NCBI RefSeq assembly: GCF_902713615.1
Contig: NC_052148.1
Location: forward strand, 20,131,888-20,195,887
Direction of reading: 5' to 3'
Source: Scyliorhinus canicula
Lineage: Eukaryota
DNA: 64,000 bases
Shown: one piece after another, positions 21,724 to 51,200 of the stretch
How the letters are laid out: the number at the start of each line of letters is the position of its first letter
Numbering within the stretch: position 1 is the first letter of the stretch
Translations under genes and position numbers: made by a program
The notes under the pieces: generated by a model
What the model was told of the DNA's origin: nothing
What the model saw: only the letters and a program-made list of their open reading frames with translations
The model's database searches: none

Positions 21724-22055
21724 GGGGAGGCACGGTGGCATAGTGGTTAGCTCTGCTGCCTCACAGTGCCAGGGACCCAGGTTCAATTCTGGCCTTGGGA
21801 AACAGCCTGTGTGGAATTTGCATTTTCTCCCCTTGTCTGCGTGGATTTCCTCCGCAGACTCCGGTTTCCTCCCACAGTCCAAAAATGTGCAGGTTAGGTG
21901 AACTGACCATGATAAATTGCCCCTTAGTGTCCAGGGATATATGCAGGTTAGGTTATGGGGTTATCGGGATAGGGTGGGGAAGTGGGCCTAGATAGGGTGC
22001 CCTTTCAGAGGGCCAGTGAAGACTCAATGGGCTGAATGGCCTCCTCTGCACCAGG
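21724..22055 (+). mobile_element. HE1/V-SINE variant inserted in a CR1 relic
   Basis: tRNA-like head and V-domain. Confidence 0.8.
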
Positions 22056-22337
22056 GGTTCAATGAAAAAATTCCCCCTCACCCCTGTCTTGAATGGGTGA
22101 CCCCCCTTACTCTGACCCCCCTATGGCCTAGACTCTCCAACAAGGGGAATCATCCTCTGAGCATCTCCCCTATCAAGCACCCTGAGACCCTTATATATTC
22201 CAAGATCACCTCTCATTCTTCTAAACTCCGATGGATATAGGCCCAACCTGCTCAACCTTTCCTCATAAGACATACCCCTCATCCCAGGGGATAAGCCTAG
22301 TGAATCTTCTCTGAACTTGTTCAAGTGAAAGTATATG

Positions 22338-23073
22338 GGGCGAGATTCTCCCATATGGGGAGAAATCGTAAGGCTGGCGTCAAACCCGGGCGGGTTTGAC
22401 GCCAGCCCCCCCCTTCCCGACCGGGAACCGATTCTGGTCCCCGGTCAGGGCTAGCAGCCCGACGCCGTAGGCTCCGGCATCACGGGCTTAACGAATTTCG
22501 TTAAGCCCGCTTGCCCGAGTTAGCGCCGGCTGACGCGTCATATGACGTCGGCCGCGCATGCGCGGATTGGAAGACTCCAACCCGCGCATGCGCGGATGAC
22601 GTCATCGCGTATTTGCGCGAAACCCGCGCATGCGCGGGCCGGGATGCCCCTCAGCCGCCCCGCGAATGGATACTGCGGGGCGGCGGAAGGACAAATAGTG
22701 CGCGGGCATCGGGCCCGCTGCCCGCGATCGGTGCCTACCGATCGCGGGCCCATGGCACCCTTGGCACGGCCATGGTACTGCCGTGCCAATCGGTGCCATG
22801 GTTATAAAATGCGAGTGTTTACGGCCGTTTTTACGAACGGCCAGACCAGGTGTGTTTGCCGTTCGTAAAAACAGCCGTAAAGGGCTGGGAACTCGGCCCA
22901 TCTATCAGCTGTGAATCGCTGCCGGCCGTAAAAAAACGGCGGCAGCGATTCGTGTCGGGAGTTGGGCGTGGGGGGGGGGGGAGAATAGCGGGAGGGCGTC
23001 GGAACAGCGTGGCCGTAAAATTTTACGAGCCACGCTATTCTCCGCACCGTCGGGAGTGCGGAGAATCTCGCCC
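22338..23073. mobile_element. GC-rich Harbinger-type MITE
   Basis: 14-bp TIR GGGCGAGATTCTCC/GGAGAATCTCGCCC, 3-bp flanks ATG/ACG. Confidence 0.85.
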
Positions 23074-23109
23074 ACGATTCCTTAAATACGGTGACCAAAA
23101 AATCACACC

Positions 23110-23622
23110 ATATTCCCCGTGTCCTGGTCAATATTTATCGTTCTCATTAGCCTTTGGAATTGAAAGCAAATTATTTAACCTTGATAGGGAATTGGCTCAT
23201 TGACAGGGAGAAAGGGCAAATACTTGACAGGAAGTGACAAGTGGCGTCTTGCAAGGATCTGTGTTGGGGCCTCAACTACTCGCTGTATTTATTAAAGATT
23301 CAGATGATGGGATATCAAGCATCTATCCAAGTTTCTGAATGGCACAAAGAATTGTAAACATATTTACAATGTACATAATGTGAAATATGAATAGGTTAAT
23401 TGAATTGGCAAAACTGTGATAAATGCATTTCGGTGCAGACATGTGTGAAGTCATCCACTTTGGACATAAAAATGATTGAACGGTGTACTTTCCAAATGCT
23501 GAGAGGCGCAATATAATGGAGGACCTGAGATATTGGGGGTTCAAGGTACACAGATTATTAAAATATCATAAAGAGGAGCTGAAAACAATCAAAAAGGCTC
23601 ATGGAATGCTAACCTTAATATA
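23110..23622 (+). mobile_element. Old CR1 relic hosting the Penelope palindrome (continues at 28643)
   Basis: QGSVLGP motif. The empty-site join atggaatgctaaccttaatata|ggggctagaa resembles CR1 GMLAFIxRGLE. Confidence 0.75.
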
Positions 23623-23710
23623 ATGATGTGGAGATGCCGGCGTTGGACTGGGGTGAGCACAGTAAGAAGTCTTACAACACCAGGTTAAAGTCCAACAGGT
23701 TTGTTTCAAA

Positions 23711-23745
23711 CACGAGCTTTCGGAGCACGGCTCCTTCTTCAGGTG
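23711..23745 (-). ncRNA. Minimal hammerhead ribozyme (left arm; sense to the host DOCK pre-mRNA)
   Basis: Exact reverse complement of 28557-28591. Confidence 0.8.
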
Positions 23746-23890
23746 AATGGAAAGGCTTGTTCCAGAAATGTTTATATAGACACAGTCAGAGATGCCCCGG
23801 AATGCGAGCACCTGCAGGCAATCAAATCATCAAAGATGCAGAGAGAGAGGTAACTCCAGGTTAAAGAGGTGTGAATTGTCCCAAGCCAGT

Positions 23891-26146
23891 TCAGTCGGTA
23901 GGCCTCTGCAAGTCCAGGCTTGTTGGTGGGGGCCGAATGTAATGCGACATGAATCCCAGATCCCGGTTGAGTCCGCATTCATGCGTGCGGAACTTAGCTA
24001 TAAGTTTTTGCTCAGCAATTTTGCGTTGTCGCGTCTCCTGAAGGCCTCCTTGTAGAATGCTGACCCGGAGATCAGAGGCTGAATGTCCTTGACTGCTGAA
24101 GTGTTCCCCAACTGGAAGGGAACAGTCCTGCCTGTTGATAGTCGCACGATGCCCGTTTATTCGTTGTCGCAGTGACTGCATGGTCTCGCCAATGTACCAC
24201 GCTTCGGGACATCCTTTCCTGCAGCGTATGAGGTAGACTACATTGGTCGAGTCGCACGAGTATGCGCCGCGTACCTGGTGGGTGGTGTTTCCACGTGTAA
24301 TGGTGGTGTCCATGTCGATGATCTGGCATGTCTTGCAGAGATTACCCTGGCAGGGTTTTGTGGTGTTGTGGTTGCTGTTCTGAAGGCTGGGTAATTTGCT
24401 GCAAACAATGGTTTGTTTGAGGTTGCGCGGTTGTTTGAAGGCCAGTAGTGGGGGTGTGGGGATGACCTTGGCAAGATGTCCATCCTCGCTGATGATGTGT
24501 TGGAGGCTGCGAAGAAGATGTCGTAGTTTCTCCGCCCCAGGAAAGCACTGGACGACGAAGGGTACTCTGTCAGTGGTGTCCCGTGTTTGTCTTCTGAGGA
24601 GGTCGGTGCGGTTTTTTGCTGTGGCGCGGTGGAACTGTCGATCAATGAGTCGAGCGCCATATCCCGTTCGTACGAGGGCATCTTTCAGCATCTGTAGGTG
24701 TCTGTTGCGCTCCTCCTTGTCTGAGCAGATCCTGTGTATACGGAGGGCTTGTCCATAGGGGATGGCTTCTTTAATGTGTTTCGGGTGAAAGCTGGAGAAG
24801 TGGAGCATCGTGAGATTATCTGTGGGCTTGCGGTAAAGCGAGGTGCTGAGGTGACCGTCCTTGATGGAGACGAGTGTGTCCAAGAATGGAACTGAATTTG
24901 GAGAATAGTCCATGGTGAGTTTGATGGTGGGATGGAACTTATTGATGTCATCGTGTAGTCGTTTCAGTGATGTCTCGCCGTGGGTCCAAAGGAAAAAAAT
25001 GTCATCGATGTATCTGGTGTATAGCATCGGTTGAAAGTCCTGTGTGGTGAGGAAGTCCTGTTCAAACTTGTGCATGAAGATGTTGGCATATTGAGGTGCA
25101 AATTTGGTCCCCATGGCTGTTCCGTGCATCTGGATGAAGAATTTGTTGTCGAAGGTGAAGACGTTGTGGTCTAGAATGAAACGGATGAGTTGCAGAATTG
25201 CGTCTGGAGATTGGCAGTTGTCGGTGTTGAGGACTGAGGCTGTTGCAGCAATGCCGTCGTCATGGGGGATGCTGGTGTAGAGTGCCGAGACATCCATTGT
25301 GACGAGGAATGTTCCTGGTTCAACTGGTCCATGGGTGCTGAGTTTCTGTAGGAAGTCCGTCGTGTCGCGACAGAAGCTGGGTGTACCTTGTACGATGGGT
25401 TTCAAGATGCCCTCGATGTGGCCAGAGAGGTTCTCACACAGGGTCCCATTGCCTGAAACGATAGGACGGCCTGGTGTGTTGGCCTTGTGTATTTTCGGGA
25501 GGCAGTAGAGATCTCCAATGCGGGGATTACGTGGGATGAGAGCACGTAGGGTGTTCTGAAGGTCTGGATCTAAGGTCTTGATCAGTCTGCTGAGTTGGCG
25601 GATGTGTTCCTTGGTTTGATCTGCGGGTAACTGCCTGTAGTGTTCCTGGTTGTCGAGTTGTCGGTATACTTCTTTGCAGTAGTCTGTTCTGTTCAGTATG
25701 ACGGTGGCCCCTCCTTTGTCTGCTGGTTTGATGACGATGTTGCGGTTGGTCTTGAGAGTGCGGATGGCGTTGCGTTGTGCTTGGGTGACGTTTGAGGCTG
25801 CCTTGTGATTGCGAGTGATGAATCTGGCATTGACACGACTTCTGACGGCTTGAGCATACATGTCGAGTCTAGGGCAGCGGCCTTCCGGAGGGGTCCAATT
25901 TGACTCTTTCCTTTTCGGTTGCTGCACTGCAGATCTCGCGGTCTGCTGTTCCGGTTCATTGGTCGTGTCCCTGGGTTCGCTGTCGGCCTCTTGGGGTCTG
26001 TGGAAGAATTCCCGGAGCCTCATTCGCCTGATGAATTCCTCCGTATCTGCCGCGAGACTGATGGGGTCCATTTTGGTGGTGGTGCAGAAATTGAGCCCTC
26101 TGCTGAGGACTTCGATTTCGTCTGGTTGAAGGGTGTAGTCTGACAA
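23891..26146 (-). CDS. Penelope-like RT + GIY-YIG endonuclease ORF, left arm (5'-truncated; track start is TTG)
   Basis: Motifs IKPADKG, LPKIHK..GRPIVS, MDVSALYTSI, GTAMG, YIDD, Cys linker PCQGNLCKTC and GIY-YIG (NVVYLIRC..WYIGET). 751 codons without a stop. Confidence 0.93.
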   Translation of the reverse strand: MSDYTLQPDEIEVLSRGLNFCTTTKMDPISLAADTEEFIRRMRLREFFHRPQEADSEPRDTTNEPEQQTARSAVQQPKRKESNWTPPEGRCPRLDMYAQAVRSRVNARFITRNHKAASNVTQAQRNAIRTLKTNRNIVIKPADKGGATVILNRTDYCKEVYRQLDNQEHYRQLPADQTKEHIRQLSRLIKTLDPDLQNTLRALIPRNPRIGDLYCLPKIHKANTPGRPIVSGNGTLCENLSGHIEGILKPIVQGTPSFCRDTTDFLQKLSTHGPVEPGTFLVTMDVSALYTSIPHDDGIAATASVLNTDNCQSPDAILQLIRFILDHNVFTFDNKFFIQMHGTAMGTKFAPQYANIFMHKFEQDFLTTQDFQPMLYTRYIDDIFFLWTHGETSLKRLHDDINKFHPTIKLTMDYSPNSVPFLDTLVSIKDGHLSTSLYRKPTDNLTMLHFSSFHPKHIKEAIPYGQALRIHRICSDKEERNRHLQMLKDALVRTGYGARLIDRQFHRATAKNRTDLLRRQTRDTTDRVPFVVQCFPGAEKLRHLLRSLQHIISEDGHLAKVIPTPPLLAFKQPRNLKQTIVCSKLPSLQNSNHNTTKPCQGNLCKTCQIIDMDTTITRGNTTHQVRGAYSCDSTNVVYLIRCRKGCPEAWYIGETMQSLRQRINGHRATINRQDCSLPVGEHFSSQGHSASDLRVSILQGGLQETRQRKIAEQKLIAKFRTHECGLNRDLGFMSHYIRPPPTSLDLQRPTD

Positions 26147-26155
26147 GTTGTCAGC

Positions 26156-28411
26156 TTGTCAGACTACACCCTTCAACCAGACAAAATCGAAGTCCTCAGC
26201 AGAGGGCTCAATTTCTGCACCACCACCAAAATGGACCCCATCAGTCTCGCGGCAGATATGGAGGAATTCATCAGGCGAATGAGGCTCCGGGAATTCTTCC
26301 ACAGACCCCAAGAGGCCGACAGCGAACCCAGGGACACGACCAATGAACCGGAACAGCAGACCGCGAGATCTGCAGTGCAGCAACCGAAAAGGAAAGAGTC
26401 AAATTGGACCCCTCCGGAAGGCCGCTGCCCTAGACTCGACATGTATGCTCAAGCCGTCAGAAGTCGTGTCAATGCCAGATTCATCACTCGCAATCACAAG
26501 GCAGCCTCAAACGTCACCCAAGCACAACGCAACGCCATCCGCACTCTCAAGACCAACCGCAACATCGTCATCAAACCAGCAGACAAAGGAGGGGCCACCG
26601 TCATACTGAACAGAACAGACTACTGCAAAGAAGTATACCGACAACTCGACAACCAGGAACACTACAGGCAGTTACCCGCAGATCCAACCAAGGAACACAT
26701 CCGCCAACTCAGCAGACTGATCAAGACCTTAGATCCAGACCTTCAGAACACCCTACGTGCTCTCATCCCACGTAATCCCCGCATTGGAGATCTCTACTGC
26801 CTCCCGAAAATACACAAGGCCAACACACCAGGCCGTCCTATCGTTTCAGGCAATGGGACCCTGTGTGAGAACCTCTCTGGCCACATCGAGGGCATCTTGA
26901 AACCCATCGTACAAGGTACACCCAGCTTCTGTCGCGACACGACGGACTTCCTACAGAAACTCAGCACCCATGGACCAGTTGAACCAGGAACATTCCTCGT
27001 CACAATGGATGTCTCGGCACTCTACACCAGCATCCCCCATGACGACGGCATTGCTGCAACAGCCTCAGTCCTCAACACCGACAACTGCCAATCTCCAGAC
27101 GCAATTCTGCAACTCATCCGTTTTATTCTAGACCACAACGTCTTCACCTTCGACAACAAATTCTTCATCCAGACGCACGGAACAGCCATGGGGACCAAAT
27201 TTGCACCTCAATATGCCAACATCTTCATGCACAAGTTTGAACAGGACTTCCTCACCACACAGGACTTTCAACCGATGCTATACACCAGATACATCGATGA
27301 CATTTTTTTCCTTTGGACCCACGGCGAGACATCACTGAAACGACTACACGATGACATCAATAAGTTCCATCCCACCATCAAACTCACCATGGACTATTCT
27401 CCAAATTCAGTTCCATTCTTGGACACACTCGTCTCCATCAAGGACGGTCACCTCAGCACCTCGCTTTACCGCAAGCCCACAGATAATCTCACGATGCTCC
27501 ACTTCTCCAGCTTTCACCCGAAACACATTAAAGAAGCCATCCCCTATGGACAAGCCCTCCGTATACACAGGATCTGCTCAGACAAGGAGGAGCGCAACAG
27601 ACACCTACAGATGCTGAAAGATGCCCTCGTACGAACGGGATATGGCGCTCGACTCATTGATCGACAGTTCCACCGCGCCACAGCAAAAAACCGCACCGAC
27701 CTCCTCAGAAGACAAACACGGGACACCACTGACAGAGTACCCTTCGTCGTCCAGTACTTTCCTGGGGCGGAGAAACTACGACATCTTCTTCGCAGCCTCC
27801 AACACATCATCAGCGAGGATGGACATCTTGCCAAGGTCATCCCCACACCCCCACTACTGGCCTTCAAACAACCGCGCAACCTCAAACAAACCATTGTTTG
27901 CAGCAAATTACCCAGCCTTCAGAACAGCAACCACAACACCACAAAACCCTGCCAGGGTAATCTCTGCAAGACATGCCAGATCATCGACATGGACACCACC
28001 ATTACACGTGGAAACACCACCCACCAGGTATGCGGCGCATACTCGTGCGACTCGACCAATGTAGTCTACCTCATACGCTGCAGGAAAGGATGTCCCGAAG
28101 CGTGGTACATTGGCGAGACCATGCAGACACTGCGACAACGAATAAACGGGCATCGTGCGACTATCAACAGGCAGGACTGTTCCCTTCCAGTTGGGGAACA
28201 CTTCAGCAGTCAAGGACATTCAGCCTCTGATCTCCGGGTCAGCATTCTACAAGGAGGCCTTCAGGAGACGCGACAACGCAAAATTGCTGAGCAAAAACTT
28301 ATAGCTAAGTTCCGCACGCATGAATGCGGGCTCAACCGGGATCTGGGATTCATGTCGCATTACATTCGGCCCCCACCAACAAGCCTGGACTTGCAGAGGC
28401 CTACCGACTGA
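26156..28411 (+). CDS. Penelope-like RT + GIY-YIG endonuclease ORF, right arm (5'-truncated; track start is TTG)
   Basis: Same motifs as the left arm. Seven amino-acid differences seen between the two arms. Confidence 0.93.
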   Translation: MSDYTLQPDKIEVLSRGLNFCTTTKMDPISLAADMEEFIRRMRLREFFHRPQEADSEPRDTTNEPEQQTARSAVQQPKRKESNWTPPEGRCPRLDMYAQAVRSRVNARFITRNHKAASNVTQAQRNAIRTLKTNRNIVIKPADKGGATVILNRTDYCKEVYRQLDNQEHYRQLPADPTKEHIRQLSRLIKTLDPDLQNTLRALIPRNPRIGDLYCLPKIHKANTPGRPIVSGNGTLCENLSGHIEGILKPIVQGTPSFCRDTTDFLQKLSTHGPVEPGTFLVTMDVSALYTSIPHDDGIAATASVLNTDNCQSPDAILQLIRFILDHNVFTFDNKFFIQTHGTAMGTKFAPQYANIFMHKFEQDFLTTQDFQPMLYTRYIDDIFFLWTHGETSLKRLHDDINKFHPTIKLTMDYSPNSVPFLDTLVSIKDGHLSTSLYRKPTDNLTMLHFSSFHPKHIKEAIPYGQALRIHRICSDKEERNRHLQMLKDALVRTGYGARLIDRQFHRATAKNRTDLLRRQTRDTTDRVPFVVQYFPGAEKLRHLLRSLQHIISEDGHLAKVIPTPPLLAFKQPRNLKQTIVCSKLPSLQNSNHNTTKPCQGNLCKTCQIIDMDTTITRGNTTHQVCGAYSCDSTNVVYLIRCRKGCPEAWYIGETMQTLRQRINGHRATINRQDCSLPVGEHFSSQGHSASDLRVSILQGGLQETRQRKIAEQKLIAKFRTHECGLNRDLGFMSHYIRPPPTSLDLQRPTD

Positions 28412-28556
28412 ACTGGCTTGGGACAATTCACACCTCTTTAACCTGGAGTTACCTCTCTCTCTGCATCTTTGATGATTTGATTGCCTGCAGGTGCTCGCAT
28501 TCCGGGGCATCTCTGACTGTGTCTATATAAACATTTCTGGAACAAGCCTTTCCATT

Positions 28557-28591
28557 CACCTGAAGAAGGAGCCGTGCTCCGAAAGCTCGTG
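28557..28591 (+). ncRNA. Minimal type I hammerhead ribozyme in the Penelope 3' region (right arm)
   Basis: cac-CTGAAGA-a-GGAGC cgt GCTCC-GAA-AGCT-C-gtg: CUGANGA and GAAA core, 5-bp stem II, palindromic AGCT stem III, cac/gtg stem I. Confidence 0.8.
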
Positions 28592-28692
28592 TTTGAAACA
28601 AACCTGTTGGACTTTAACCTGGTGTTGTAAGACTTCTTACTGAACCTTAATATAGGGGCTAGAAGTCATACTTCAACAATACAATGCATGTC

Positions 28693-29108
28693 TTACGAAG
28701 AAAAGTTAAGGGAGCTAGGGCTTTTCTCACTGGAGCGAAGAAGGCAGAGAGGTGACTTGATAGATGTGTACAAGGTGATGAGAGGCATGGATAGAGTGGA
28801 TAGCCAGAGACTTTTCCCCAGGGTGGAAATGGCTGTCACGAGGGGTATAATTTTAAGGTGATTGGAGGAAGGTATAGGGGAGATGTCAGAGGTAGGTTCT
28901 TTATAGAGAGTGGTGGGTGCGTGGAATGCACTGCCAGCAGAGGTGGTGGAGTCAGAGTCATTAGGGACATTTAAGCGACTCTCTGACAAGCACATGGCCA
29001 GCAGTAAATTGTGGGTTCGGTTGATCTGAGATTAGGATAAATGGTCGGCACAACATCGTGGGCTGAAAGGCCTGTACCATGCTGTACTGTTCTACGTTCT
29101 ATGTTCTA
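28693..29108 (+). mobile_element. CR1 3' fragment
   Basis: YEEKLRELGLFSLERRRQRGDLIDVYK peptide and a TTCTATG tail. Confidence 0.85.
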
Positions 29109-29254
29109 ATACAAGGTCCTGGTTAGACTAGAGCTGAAGCATTGTGAGCAATTCTGGAAAGCACACATGATGAAGGATCTACTGGCCCAAGAGAAGGTGC
29201 ACGAGAAATTTTCCAGAATGATACCTGAAATCCAAGGGTTAAATTGCCTGGAGA

Positions 29255-29477
29255 GGGCAGCATGGTGGTGCAGTGGGTTAGCCCTGTTACCTCACGGCGC
29301 CGAGGTCCCAGGTTCGATCCCGTCTCTGGGTCACTGTCCGTGTGGAGTTTGCACATCCTCCCCGTGTTTGTGTGGGCTTCGCCCCCACAACCCAAAGATG
29401 TGCAGGGTAGATGGATTGGCCACGCTAAATTGCCCCTTAATCGAAAAAAATGAATGGGTATTCTAAATTTTTTTTAA
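29255..29477 (+). mobile_element. Short A/T-tailed SINE with long TSD
   Basis: TSD AAATTGCC(T/C)GGAGA at 29241-29254 and 29478-29491. Shortened V-domain. Same tail as 17225-17317. Confidence 0.85.
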
Positions 29478-32400
29478 AAATTGCCCGGAGAGATTGCAAT
29501 AGCTAAGGTTCTACTTTCTGGAATTTGGAACGTTAAGGGGTGGTTTGGAGGTCTTGTTGTGAAGTGGGTAGCGTCTCTGCCTCTCAACCAGAAGCTCTGG
29601 ATTTGAGTCCCACTCCAGAACATGATGACCAAGGAAGGTGGGTTCATAATGTGGCCAAACAGATTGAGTGTCAACCTGCAAAATCTTTCCAACGCACGCC
29701 GATGGCTGGCGGTAAGAGTGGGAGAGACTCCATGTCAGCCATGTGATGAAACGAAAGTTGGGTGCACTACCATCAGTATCCATAGCTCCGGACGACTACA
29801 AGTATGTTGCCGCAGCAATGTGGACCCCCCCGAGTGATCTGTGACACACCACAAGAGATAATTTGACGATTTCAAGCTATTCAATGGAACAAACTTTGAG
29901 GAGGAGAAACTATTCCCAGTGGTTGAGGAGTCTAGGACTAGGTAGTCTAAAAATTAGAACCACATTTTCAAGAGTAAGGTTGGGGTCTTAGAATCTGTTC
30001 TCACTGGAACGACGGAGGTTGAGCGGCGGCCTGATAGAGGTCTGCAAGATTATCAGTGGCCTGGACAGAGTGGATTGTCAGGTGCTCTTTCCTAGGGTAG
30101 GAGAGTAAAGTACTAGGGGACATATGTTTAAATGCATGGGGAAAAGTTTAGAACCGATTTCGATGCACGTTTTTTACACAGAGGGTGGTAAATATATGGA
30201 ACGCGCTGCCTGGGGAGGTGGTGAGAGCCAGTACGATAGTGGCATTTAAGGGGCATCTAGACAAACATATGAATAGGGTGGGAATGGAAGGATACGGACT
30301 CTGTAAGTGCAGACGGTTTTTGTTTGGGCAGGTACCATGGTCAGTGCAGGTTTGGAGTGCCGAAGGGTCAGTTCCTGTGCTGTATTGTTCTTTGTTCTTT
30401 ATTCTTTGCTTGTAATTCAGTCCTGGGTTACTGGTGCTAGAGGACAAGAGGTTGGCCAGCAGGTATCTGAGGCAGGACTTCCACCTGAATGGGGGAATGG
30501 AAGGCCCCTCTCCAGCCAACTGACGCTCCTCGGAACGGCAAATGGCTGCGGGGAAGCTGTGATCGACGGGGATGCGTTTCCCATTCTTCCAGTATCAGGT
30601 GGGGAAACATTCCCCCTCAGATAAATCCTGCCCTAATATCATGCCTCAAATTATTCACATACTGTCGCCTAAGATGTGATTTTCTGAAAGAAATCTAATT
30701 TGCATCTAAATGAATTAGCAATGACTGTTCAAGCCATCTCCCAGGGAAAACCACTCCAGAGACTGCTTTATTCGCTGATATATTCGACAGATGAGTTCTT
30801 CAATTTACACCAAGCACAGGTCATGTCCTCTGGTTCTACTGCTCTGGCTAAGGTGAAATATCTTCTTATTGCTGGACATCATCTCATTCCTTTAGACTCT
30901 GAGAAACTTCACTTACCCGGTGAAAACCTATTTCCATAATCGTTTTTCATAATCCGAACCCTTCACACCTAAATCAATCTAGTTGCATTCCCATAGATTC
31001 TTCCGATGGCTCTAAATCCTTTTTGTCCTGAGGTTGACCAGAACTGTATACAATATTCTCAGTGCCATCACGCCAATGATTTATACAGCAGCAGGATTAC
31101 CTCACTATTTTGTCTGAATATTGAAATTTTAATACATCCCAACATTTGATTTGCTTTCCTCGTTGCTGCTGAGCATTGTTGCAATTGCTTCAATTTATTG
31201 TCAGCCAGGACCCACAGGTCTCTATAATTTTCCATGCACAAAATTCTGCAGTTCCCAATGGAGCCTTTGTCACTGGCAGACAAAGGTGATGTGTTCCTTC
31301 AAGATTTACACCATTGGTGTTCTCGTTTGATCTCTCTCCCTCCCCCTGTACAACTAATCCCTTGCAGACACAGCTCCTGGAATTCCTGGGGTTGGAGAAG
31401 GGCAGAGAACAAGAATTCGACCTGAGGGGAGCGGGAATATGGGACAGCTCTTCAAGCCCTTGAGATTAGTCCATCATTCAGTTAGATCATGGCTGGAATT
31501 TTACGCTCCCCCACTGGTGGGAATTTTAGGCCAGGGTGGTGGCGGGGAATGAAGGAACGGAGTTGTCTCCGTGTTCCTGACCACACAGCAATTTTATGCT
31601 ATCGAGGGCAAGGCCTCGGACGGGAAACCCACCCTAACCTCAATAGAGGCCCTTAAGTGGCCAATTATTCACCACATAAGGGCTATTTCCTGCCCAATCA
31701 CAGGCAGGCGAATATACCGGGCCCTAGGACCCCTGAAACATACCTTGTCCTCCCGTTCCCGGAATTAGGCTCAGGTCTGTTGGTGCATTGCCTCTTCAGT
31801 CCACTGTAGCTCCTGTCATTGCAGGGACTGGAGATCTGCCAACTAAGTAGATTGGCCATGAGCACATTGAGACGGGCCTTCATCTAGAGTGATGCCGACA
31901 GTCATCGGATGTACTCCCCACCTACACTTCGAATGGCGGGAGGGGAGATCCCACCAATAGAAAAATTCAGATCTATGTCTGCTCCACATCTCGTCACATG
32001 TATCTCCATCTACTCGCCTTGGCTCACAATCCTTGCTACCCCTGCCTAACAAAAGCCTGAACTTTCGTTCGCTAGTTCGGGAGAAAGAGCTCCAGATGTT
32101 CTCATTTACATTCCAGTGAGGTGGGGGGTGGGGAGATCCATTGCACCCTGGAACAGAACTCGGGCAAAGCCACATGGGCCATGGGACTGCTCTGGGACTT
32201 CATTGCAGCTGTTTCAAAAATAATAAAACTAAAAAATAGCCCTCATTCCCCACAGCCCCTTACCTCCTACACAATCCCCATGCGTCATTCATGCCAATCC
32301 ATGCCACTTCATACTTCCAAACCCTCCATGATCTCTCATACCGACCATATCAACCTATGTCCCATCTATCCAACCCCCTTGGCCCTTTTTAGCTCCTTTC

Positions 32401-50129: not shown

Positions 50130-51200
50130 CCAACTAGTGGAGATCACAGCAGACCGCAATTATGCAGAGCACCCTCTAGGCACTGTACTGGAGGGCGCCC
50201 ACTGACCAGTCCAGGCACCGCAACTGCATCAGTCCGAATGCCTGATTGACTAGCATGCGCATTGATGCAAGAGCCACGTTGTAGCGAGTCACCACAAGTG
50301 TTTGTGGCTGCTGCACTGGCGTTGTTAACAATCTCCTGAGTGAGTACCCCTATCCCTGAGGAGCTATTCCTTCAGCCGCTGCTCTCCCTCAAAAATGTCT
50401 GGGATCTGCGAGTTCTCCAAGATGTAATTGTCATGGACTCTTCCCGGGAAACAGGCACGCCTCTGCATTATGCGCATTGTGTGGTCACAAAAGATCTGGA
50501 CATTGAGGGATGCCTGGCAAATGGGCGAAGCCCATGGCCTTGGCATCCGGGCTCATCTCATCCCAGTCCATGTTTATAAACCAACAGGTTTGTTTCAAAC
50601 ACGAGCTTTCGGAGCACGGATCCTTCTTCAGGTGAGAAGAAGGAGCCTCTCACCTGAAGAAGGAGCCGTGCTCCGAAAGCTCGTGTTTGAAACAAACCTG
50701 TTGGACTTTAACCTGGTGTTGTAAGACTTCTTACTGTGCTCACCCCAGTCCAACGCCGGCATCTCCACATCATGTTTATAAACACGTGGGTACTCGCAAA
50801 AAGGGCATCTATTACTTCCCTTATGCATTTGTGTGCAGCTGACAGGGAAATGCCACATGCGGCACTGGTGCTACCCTGAAATGAGCCACTTGCAGAGGTT
50901 CAGAGCGGCGGTAAGTTTAAGGGCCTTGGGAAGTGGGTGTCCTCCCATTCCATGTGGTGCCAGCTCTTGCAGGACTTGGCAAGATGGTCCACCCATCCCC
51001 TCAGGACAGACACAGTCTTCTCTGACATTGAAGCTCCGATATCTGCAGGTAGGATATCCGGCATCGGAAGGCCCTTTACCGGGAGGGTCACCTACAAGGC
51101 TCCACCATCTGTGATGCTGCTCCCAGAACAGCTATGGGCCCAGCCTCCTCCTCCTCTGCAAGACGCTGGTCCTGGCCGCGTACAGCGACACGTCGTCCCT
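50130..51200 (-). pseudogene. Decayed Harbinger/PIF (HARBI1-like) transposase
   Basis: Fragments LKLTAALN..SGSFQG..CGIS, GFA..AGIPQ and SLNVQIFCDH..FPGRVHD.YIL..LLRDRGY, with stops and frameshifts. Interrupted by the mini-Penelope. Boundaries approximate. Confidence 0.75.
50581..50773. mobile_element. Miniature palindromic Penelope 3'-end insertion with two opposed hammerheads
   Basis: 50581-50637 is inverted with 50648-50704, and the plus arm continues to the element end ...GGCATCTCCACATCAT. Flanked by (CAT)GTTTATAAAC at 50569-50581 and 50771-50783. Nearly identical to the 3' ends of the large palindrome. Confidence 0.92.

Follow-up and report, generated by a model that had tools for sequence, protein, structure and literature searches.

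A near-perfect 5-kb palindrome of two head-to-head Penelope-like element copies at a single target site in the shark Scyliorhinus canicula

We describe here a 5-kb insertion in a window of 64,000 nucleotides from the shark Scyliorhinus canicula (assembly GCF_902713615.1, contig NC_052148.1, positions 20,131,888 to 20,195,887; unless stated otherwise, coordinates are positions in this window), in which two 5'-truncated copies of a Penelope-like element (PLE) stand head to head within one target site duplication (TSD). A first-pass annotation of the window, made from its letters alone, had proposed that the two copies were integrated in one event, and the present analysis supports this. We consider it very probable that the element is a PLE and that the unit arose by a single integration event, the latter because the TSD is single and exact, the host CR1 element is colinear through the empty site, and the differences between the two arms fit a pair that was identical at insertion. 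The insertion is a very clean instance of an architecture already described for PLEs and not the product of a new pathway. How the two copies were made and joined is a separate question, for which we favor priming on both target strands followed by a switch from one cDNA to the other, at about an even chance.

Structure of the palindrome and its target site

A repeat search returns a single inverted repeat with arms at 23660–26150 and 26152–28642, each of 2491 nt and ungapped, in agreement with the earlier description of arms that mirror each other without any indel. The left arm is a 5'-truncated copy on the minus strand with its 3' end leftward, and the right arm is a 5'-truncated copy on the plus strand with its 3' end rightward. 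When compared base by base about the mirror axis at 26151, the arms differ at 10 sites (0.40%), with eight transitions, four of them at CpG, and two transversions; the count by eye had been at least nine substitutions with at least four at CpG. The innermost mismatch is the pair 26148/26154, and the 7-nt spacer that had been reported for 26148–26154 can equally be read as a 1-nt centre and one mismatch at 26148/26154, the data being identical under the two readings. The sequence of this centre, TTGTCAG, lies on the element's own quasi-palindrome TTGTCAA and includes a 3-nt microhomology, TTG, that is common to both arms. As had been noted, one outer end is 37 nt shorter than the other. The left copy extends further outward by a 3'-terminal tail (23623–23659, minus strand) to the terminus ...CACATCAT, and in read contigs hundreds of family copies end at the same place (23623/23624), while the right copy is tail-less and ends in ...CTTACTG.

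The unit is enclosed by an exact 12-bp TSD, AACCTTAATATA, recovered by repeat search at 23611–23622 and 28643–28654, with both copies abutting the element ends, so that the single duplication around the whole unit is borne out. Both flanks are parts of one CR1 element. On the left (23234–23622, plus strand) it has a reverse transcriptase (RT)-like translation (..VLQGSVLGPQLL..) and can be aligned with other CR1 copies as far as the TSD and across it, and on the right (28655–29050, plus strand) it continues into the C-terminal CR1 region (..YEEKLRELGLFSLERRR..). A translated search and a local alignment against three further CR1 copies from the window show that the host CR1 runs uninterrupted through one copy of the TSD and about 35 nt further, and thus reads through the empty site as had been claimed; a nucleotide BLAST of the empty site against the other CR1 copies of the window gave no match spanning the junction, which the translated search and local alignment did span. 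Relative to the three other copies, the host CR1 has a gap of about 122 nt in the 28690 region, which begins about 35 nt rightward of the site. A target deletion made at the insertion site was considered from this gap and rejected, since the TSD is intact and the gap is separated from the site by about 35 nt. With CR1 colinear through one TSD copy and the deletion elsewhere, the insertion was clean and used a 12-bp staggered cut in AT-rich DNA.

These target-site features also bear on whether the structure is real. That a chimeric fold-back long read was built into the assembly is, in our judgment, very improbable. Such a chimera would have mirrored the flanking DNA too, whereas here the flanks differ, are unique, and together form one CR1 with an exact TSD. 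The arms moreover differ at 10 sites with a CpG-rich pattern of transitions, only one side has the 37-nt tail, and a like architecture is present at 50581–50773 and in two other shark assemblies. Two results speak for an artefact and thus weigh against our reading: no Logan contig from two DNA samples of the same species crosses 26151, and only one of four sampled words from the centre is indexed in any run. However, Logan contigs show presence, not absence. A private path of about 64 nt at about 5x depth, lying between repeat nodes of about 2000x, is expected to be pruned during contig building, and the missing centre contig is therefore uninformative and not a refutation. The contigs of four runs over the whole unit mainly reflect family abundance, with junction contigs of unique depth hidden by the ranking.

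Nine of the 10 differences between the arms fall inside the reading frames described below, seven of them nonsynonymous and two synonymous. When the seven amino-acid differences are polarised against seven homologues, the derived residue is in the left arm in four cases and in the right arm in three, and each is private to one arm. Because the derived residues are private and split 4:3, the arms would have been identical initially, and the pattern fits neutral decay since insertion. The insertion is evolutionarily young. The similarity of the arms does not by itself prove a single template, because about one family contig in five resembles the large copy of the window at 99% or more and a miniature copy at 50650–50773 is identical to its left arm across 124 nt. 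The right-arm variant A at 26183, in a Lys codon, is also seen in contigs (26162–26211, depth about 213), and this CpG-derived change is either shared with other family copies or recurrent in them.

Identity of the element and its reading frames

Each arm contains an open reading frame (ORF) of 751 codons that runs outward from the centre (23891–26146 on the minus strand and 26156–28411 on the plus strand), and the two are identical at 744 of 751 residues. Each would encode an N-terminally truncated RT followed by a GIY-YIG endonuclease. The frames match Pfam RVT_1 (E=6e-10), with YIDD at residue 379, and their C-terminal 171 residues match Pfam GIY-YIG at E=4e-4 and 21 bits, just below the curated 22.6. 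Also recognised are an ADKG motif and VVYLI..YIGET (residues 636–655 of the right-arm frame), with a CKTC cysteine pair upstream of the latter. In a search of 5.8 billion proteins (E<=1e-10), 3899 homologues were found, with precomputed domains PF00078, PF28514, and PF26215 and, in many, PF01541 (GIY-YIG). The closest are in sharks (Scyliorhinus torazame, 91%; Heptranchias perlo, 85%; Mustelus asterias, 82%), followed by turtles, echinoderms, ticks, and amphioxus, and the nearest named relatives of the RT are uncharacterised shark and turtle proteins. Judged by its sequence, the element is an endonuclease-containing PLE of the Penelope/Poseidon type, with a predicted RT and C-terminal GIY-YIG domain in one ORF.

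The earlier statement that both RT-endonuclease frames are open holds for each arm, with the qualification that both are headless. Full-length relatives have 881–882 residues, of which about 153 at the N-terminus are additional to the window frames, and neither window frame has the element's own start codon. In a tandem unit of S. torazame (locus L005), 461 nt separate the ORF ATG at the tail end from the first base of the window arms. Because the full-length relatives are longer at the N-terminus, and contigs of related species and other family copies run on past 26150, both arms are truly 5'-truncated.

A minimal hammerhead-like motif lies in the 3' untranslated region about 90 nt inside each outer end, at 23714–23742 on the minus strand and, as its mirror, at 28560–28588 on the plus strand. 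Both were found by pattern match, and the left one was also parsed by hand into CUGAAGA, a bulged A, a 5-bp helix II, GAAA, a palindromic AGCU, and a C at the cleavage position. The motif is a candidate ribozyme, and the parse agrees with the published minimal hammerhead of PLEs, including the bulged base at helix II and the palindromic AGCU (PMC4209133). The Rfam hammerhead models gave no match even at E<=10 in 22000–30500 and 23600–23900, where the Rfam output consisted of spurious microRNA-precursor matches on the palindrome centre only.

Relation to described PLE insertions

A typical Penelope insert has been described as an ORF with pseudo-long terminal repeats (pseudo-LTRs) and an adjacent inverted pseudo-LTR inside one TSD, where one of the inverted repeats may have a 31-bp tail, and palindromes at PLE junctions were interpreted as self-priming in the same 2013 study (Arkhipova et al., 2013; PMC3846280). 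A later scheme has an inverted 5'-truncated copy and a tail of 30–40 bp that is often at one end only (Craig et al., 2021, Fig. 2; PMC8557442), and a curation guide repeats it. The first-pass annotation had suggested an integration pathway that routinely builds long palindromes; as something new this is not supported, since inverted 5'-truncated copies in one TSD, the tail at one end, junction palindromes, and self-priming have all been published (PMC3846280; PMC8557442). The shark unit is like the canonical architecture in its inverted 5'-truncated head-to-head copy, its one TSD, its one-end tail in the 30–40-bp range, its palindromic junction, its heavy truncation, and perhaps the candidate hammerhead-like motif in the terminal repeat region. 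It differs in that the canonical insert usually has a full-length copy with pseudo-LTRs and a short inverted pseudo-LTR, whereas the shark unit is without a full-length copy and consists of two equal 2.5-kb ORF-bearing arms that break at the same internal nucleotide, which gives the near-perfect 5-kb palindrome. A tandem or partial tandem of pseudo-LTRs is absent from the large copy and present in its relatives at loci L005 and L006.

The purified PLE protein of Anolis (PAc, the Poseidon of Anolis carolinensis) cuts and extends both target strands in vitro, prefers AT-rich DNA, and is predicted to be a dimer. It starts reverse transcription at two adjacent sites, and the interval between them equals the tail (Frangieh et al., 2024; PMC11167929). 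The shark insertion is alike in that its target is AT-rich and its two 3' ends are 37 nt apart, just as the spacing of the PAc start sites corresponds to the tail. The PAc start sites lie 111–118 nt inside the ORF, whereas the tail end of the shark family falls on the ORF start codon (locus L005). The joining of inverted copies is left unaddressed in the PAc paper.

An inversion of the type known for L1 was also considered. In L1 twin priming, both target strands reportedly prime cDNA in one event and so give an inverted segment within a single TSD; what is inverted is said to be a different, adjacent segment of the same RNA, because the second primer anneals internally. Such twin priming neither duplicates the same segment nor leaves two outward 3' ends at defined start sites, and in the shark unit both arms cover the same 2491 nt instead of adjoining parts of an RNA, so this candidate was rejected. 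Other precedents for joining are the hairpin (snap-back) second-strand synthesis of retroviral RTs and the end-to-end template jumping of the R2 RT, in which either the same strand or a different one serves as DNA template for extending a cDNA 3' end, with homology slight or absent. Neither is known as a routine integration pathway, and nothing at the shark locus tells which of them, if either, operated.

Related insertions and family termini

Our sample of related insertions comprised the window and six loci (137 kb) found via the annotated ORFs of shark homologues, 201 kb and 10 insertion units in all, of which six are head to head. Three of the six are symmetric, namely the large copy, a miniature insertion in the same window, and a miniature at locus L001 of S. 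torazame, and three are asymmetric, namely a miniature at locus L002 (inner ends at element positions 2447 and 2404) and the units at L005 and L006. The last of these (L006:21965–26593, H. perlo) is a textbook full-length copy with terminal repeats (repeat-ORF-repeat) and an inverted truncated copy. It lies inside annotated epn2, one annotated isoform of which (P0045) contains RT sequence and is probably an annotation chimera.

Across the sample, outer ends fall into two tight classes in element positions, 2527–2529 with the tail and 2488–2494 without it. The same termini are used by simple insertions of one copy, which are tail-less at L003 (with its own 13-bp TSD) and L004 and tailed in the long copy of L001. 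In the read contigs of organism C, 281 copies end at 23659, the tail-less position. All three head-to-head units in which both canonical ends are readable (the large copy and the L001 and L002 miniatures) pair one tail arm with one tail-less arm. In the L002 miniature, the tail is unique to one arm and 43 inner nucleotides are unique to the other. Since each arm holds unique sequence, neither was copied from the other, and two templated syntheses took place. In the tandem copy of S. torazame (L005:9340–9420), the ORF start and the next unit come directly after the tail end; the base after the complete 3' end ...CACATCAT is a G there, which means that the ORF ATG straddles the tail end. The outermost reverse-transcription start of the shark family would accordingly be predicted to coincide with the ORF start codon.

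The miniature of the window consists of a recessed arm (50581–50635, minus strand; element positions 2406–2460), a 14-nt spacer (50636–50649) whose first 12 nt repeat element positions 2412–2423, and a complete arm with tail (50650–50773, plus strand; element positions 2406–2529) that is 100% identical to the left arm of the large copy. It is flanked by the TSD GTTTATAAA at 50572–50580 and 50774–50782. The arms, of 55 and 124 nt, both begin at element position 2406, and one end is recessed by 69 nt. The miniature of S. torazame (L001:14473–14696) has a similar, partly matching spacer (a GAAGAAG core is common to both) that is oriented likewise with respect to the tail arm.

In the reads, head-to-head junction words near element positions 2403–2418 (23734–23749 joined to 28554–28577; runs X1, X2, and X10) reach depths of 100–2000, compared with about 5 for unique DNA. 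The family is very abundant in these sharks, with words at its 3' end about 10^5-fold deeper than unique DNA. Particular mini-palindrome junctions thus exist in tens to hundreds of copies, and either the miniatures propagate as units or the junction forms deterministically beside helix II of the hammerhead-like motif. Among the high-depth head-to-head junctions listed, 11 of 15 have near-mirror break points within 15 nt. We considered these as independent fold-back events and rejected that interpretation, since depths of 100–2000 indicate amplified or deterministic units near position 2406.

Proposed mechanism of integration

We propose, at the even chance given above, the following sequence of steps for the large copy. 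Nicks made by the endonuclease in the two target strands, 12 bp apart, would each provide a 3'-OH to prime reverse transcription, for the left arm at the start site that includes the tail and for the right arm at the start site 37 nt upstream. The two minus-strand cDNAs would end at the same template position, most simply because a single RNA served for both and was copied up to a common end or block, a step that we infer. The 3' end of one cDNA would then pair with the other through the 3-nt TTG/CAA microhomology in the natural TTGTCAA quasi-palindrome, and each would be extended on the other.

Three observations lead us to favor priming on both strands: the recessed end is a discrete terminus, the L002 arms each hold unique sequence, and base 26151 would be templated through the microhomology at the centre. 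The recess is not arbitrary, because it equals the discrete tail-less 3' end of the family, which is used also by the simple insertions at L003 and L004 and by the 281 contigs of organism C, and by analogy with PAc the recessed end may be a start site rather than a stopping point. At the centre, the family sense sequence reads ...ATTGTCAACTTGTCAGAC (L004); loose ends of organisms B and C likewise contain family sequence from upstream of the truncation point. Agreement with the family extends as far as 26150 in the left arm and starts at 26148 in the right arm, so that the right arm agrees for 4 nt beyond the mirror point. TTG, the three bases common to both arms, can pair with CAA at the 3' end of the opposite cDNA, in which case base 26151 would be templated and not extra.

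Several points count against this mechanism. The argument from the single base at 26151 is worth only about four to one, and an identical internal truncation in two separately primed cDNAs needs the extra assumption of the same RNA and the same stop. The recess of the window miniature is 69 nt and not 37, and the sample of loci is small (10 units in 201 kb, reached via annotated ORFs) and comes partly from other shark species. The tail has alternatively been ascribed to endonuclease-mediated resolution (PMC8557442). In vitro, PAc has no strand preference between its two start sites (PMC11167929), which leaves an obligatory pairing of tail with no tail unexplained.

The mechanism put forward in the first-pass annotation was a fold-back, in which one target-primed cDNA starts from the tail, stops 2.5 kb in, turns back, copies itself almost to its start, and joins the second target end. 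We regard this as possible, if on balance doubtful. It explains the shared break point directly, as a common point of truncation and arms that start out identical follow by construction, and for the large copy it is feasible, since the tail arm could have templated the other arm, which holds nothing extra save 0–4 ambiguous central bases. The junction lies on a short natural palindrome, PLE junction palindromes have been read as self-priming (PMC3846280), and the high-depth junctions are mostly near-mirror. Those junctions, however, are the amplified or deterministic units near 2406 described above and not independent events. Fold-back moreover does not predict a stop exactly at the tail-less terminus of the family, which simple insertions also use, and since a single strand cannot fold into a 3-bp stem closed by a 1-nt loop, it has to invoke a turn-around driven by protein. 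Nor can it produce the asymmetric relatives, above all L002 with unique sequence in each arm. The discrete tail-less end and the L002 asymmetry are thus the parts that fold-back leaves unexplained.

A palindrome that was not formed at integration is quite unlikely. One 5'-truncated copy could have undergone a later inverted duplication as DNA, for instance through a template switch during replication, or the unit could have been copied from a template that was itself palindromic. That miniature palindromes may propagate as units, with similar, partly matching spacers in two species and junction words at depths of hundreds, is in keeping with such an origin. A single clean TSD enclosing the whole unit, with CR1 colinear across it, is however not what a later duplication would leave, nor would such a duplication shorten one outer end to the canonical tail-less terminus. 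The runs contain no centre word of the 5-kb unit at high copy number, and a perfect RNA hairpin of 2.5 kb is implausible as a template. All explanations other than two-strand priming and fold-back together take only a small share of the probability.

Returning to two-strand priming, we tentatively put forward a more specific, coupled form of it, which we consider speculative and rather improbable. Both nicked target strands would serve as primers for the two subunits of one ribonucleoprotein, which would work from the two start sites of a shared RNA, with the tail-less cDNA, primed upstream, leading; both would reach the same template end, and the trailing enzyme would jump onto the displaced leading cDNA. 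If this were so, the tail would necessarily be on one side only, symmetric palindromes would be the undisturbed product with the familiar asymmetric inverted repeats as variants, and one mechanism would explain both the tail asymmetry and the inverted repeats of PLEs.

Reviews describe features of the PLE transposition cycle as "still undefined", and the mechanism by which PLEs build their tandem and inverted insertions is still open. The locus is not itself a new kind of thing, yet it is a good specimen for a census-type test. It is a clean natural product with an unambiguous target, both outer ends at discrete termini, a junction defined at the base level, and arms young enough to show an identical start. 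A genome-wide count of such loci could tell two-strand priming from cDNA fold-back. Perfect palindromes on the kilobase scale also matter for genome stability, for assembly and, if they are transcribed, for the formation of double-stranded RNA.

Neighboring sequence

About 1 kb upstream of the insertion lies a GC-rich block (22400–22800), in which no coding exon was recognised. Within it, the segment 22540–22640 has 68% GC, a 30-nt inverted repeat with TGACGTCA, three copies of GCGCATGCGC, and ATTGG, and from these sequence features the block looks like a CpG-island bidirectional promoter.

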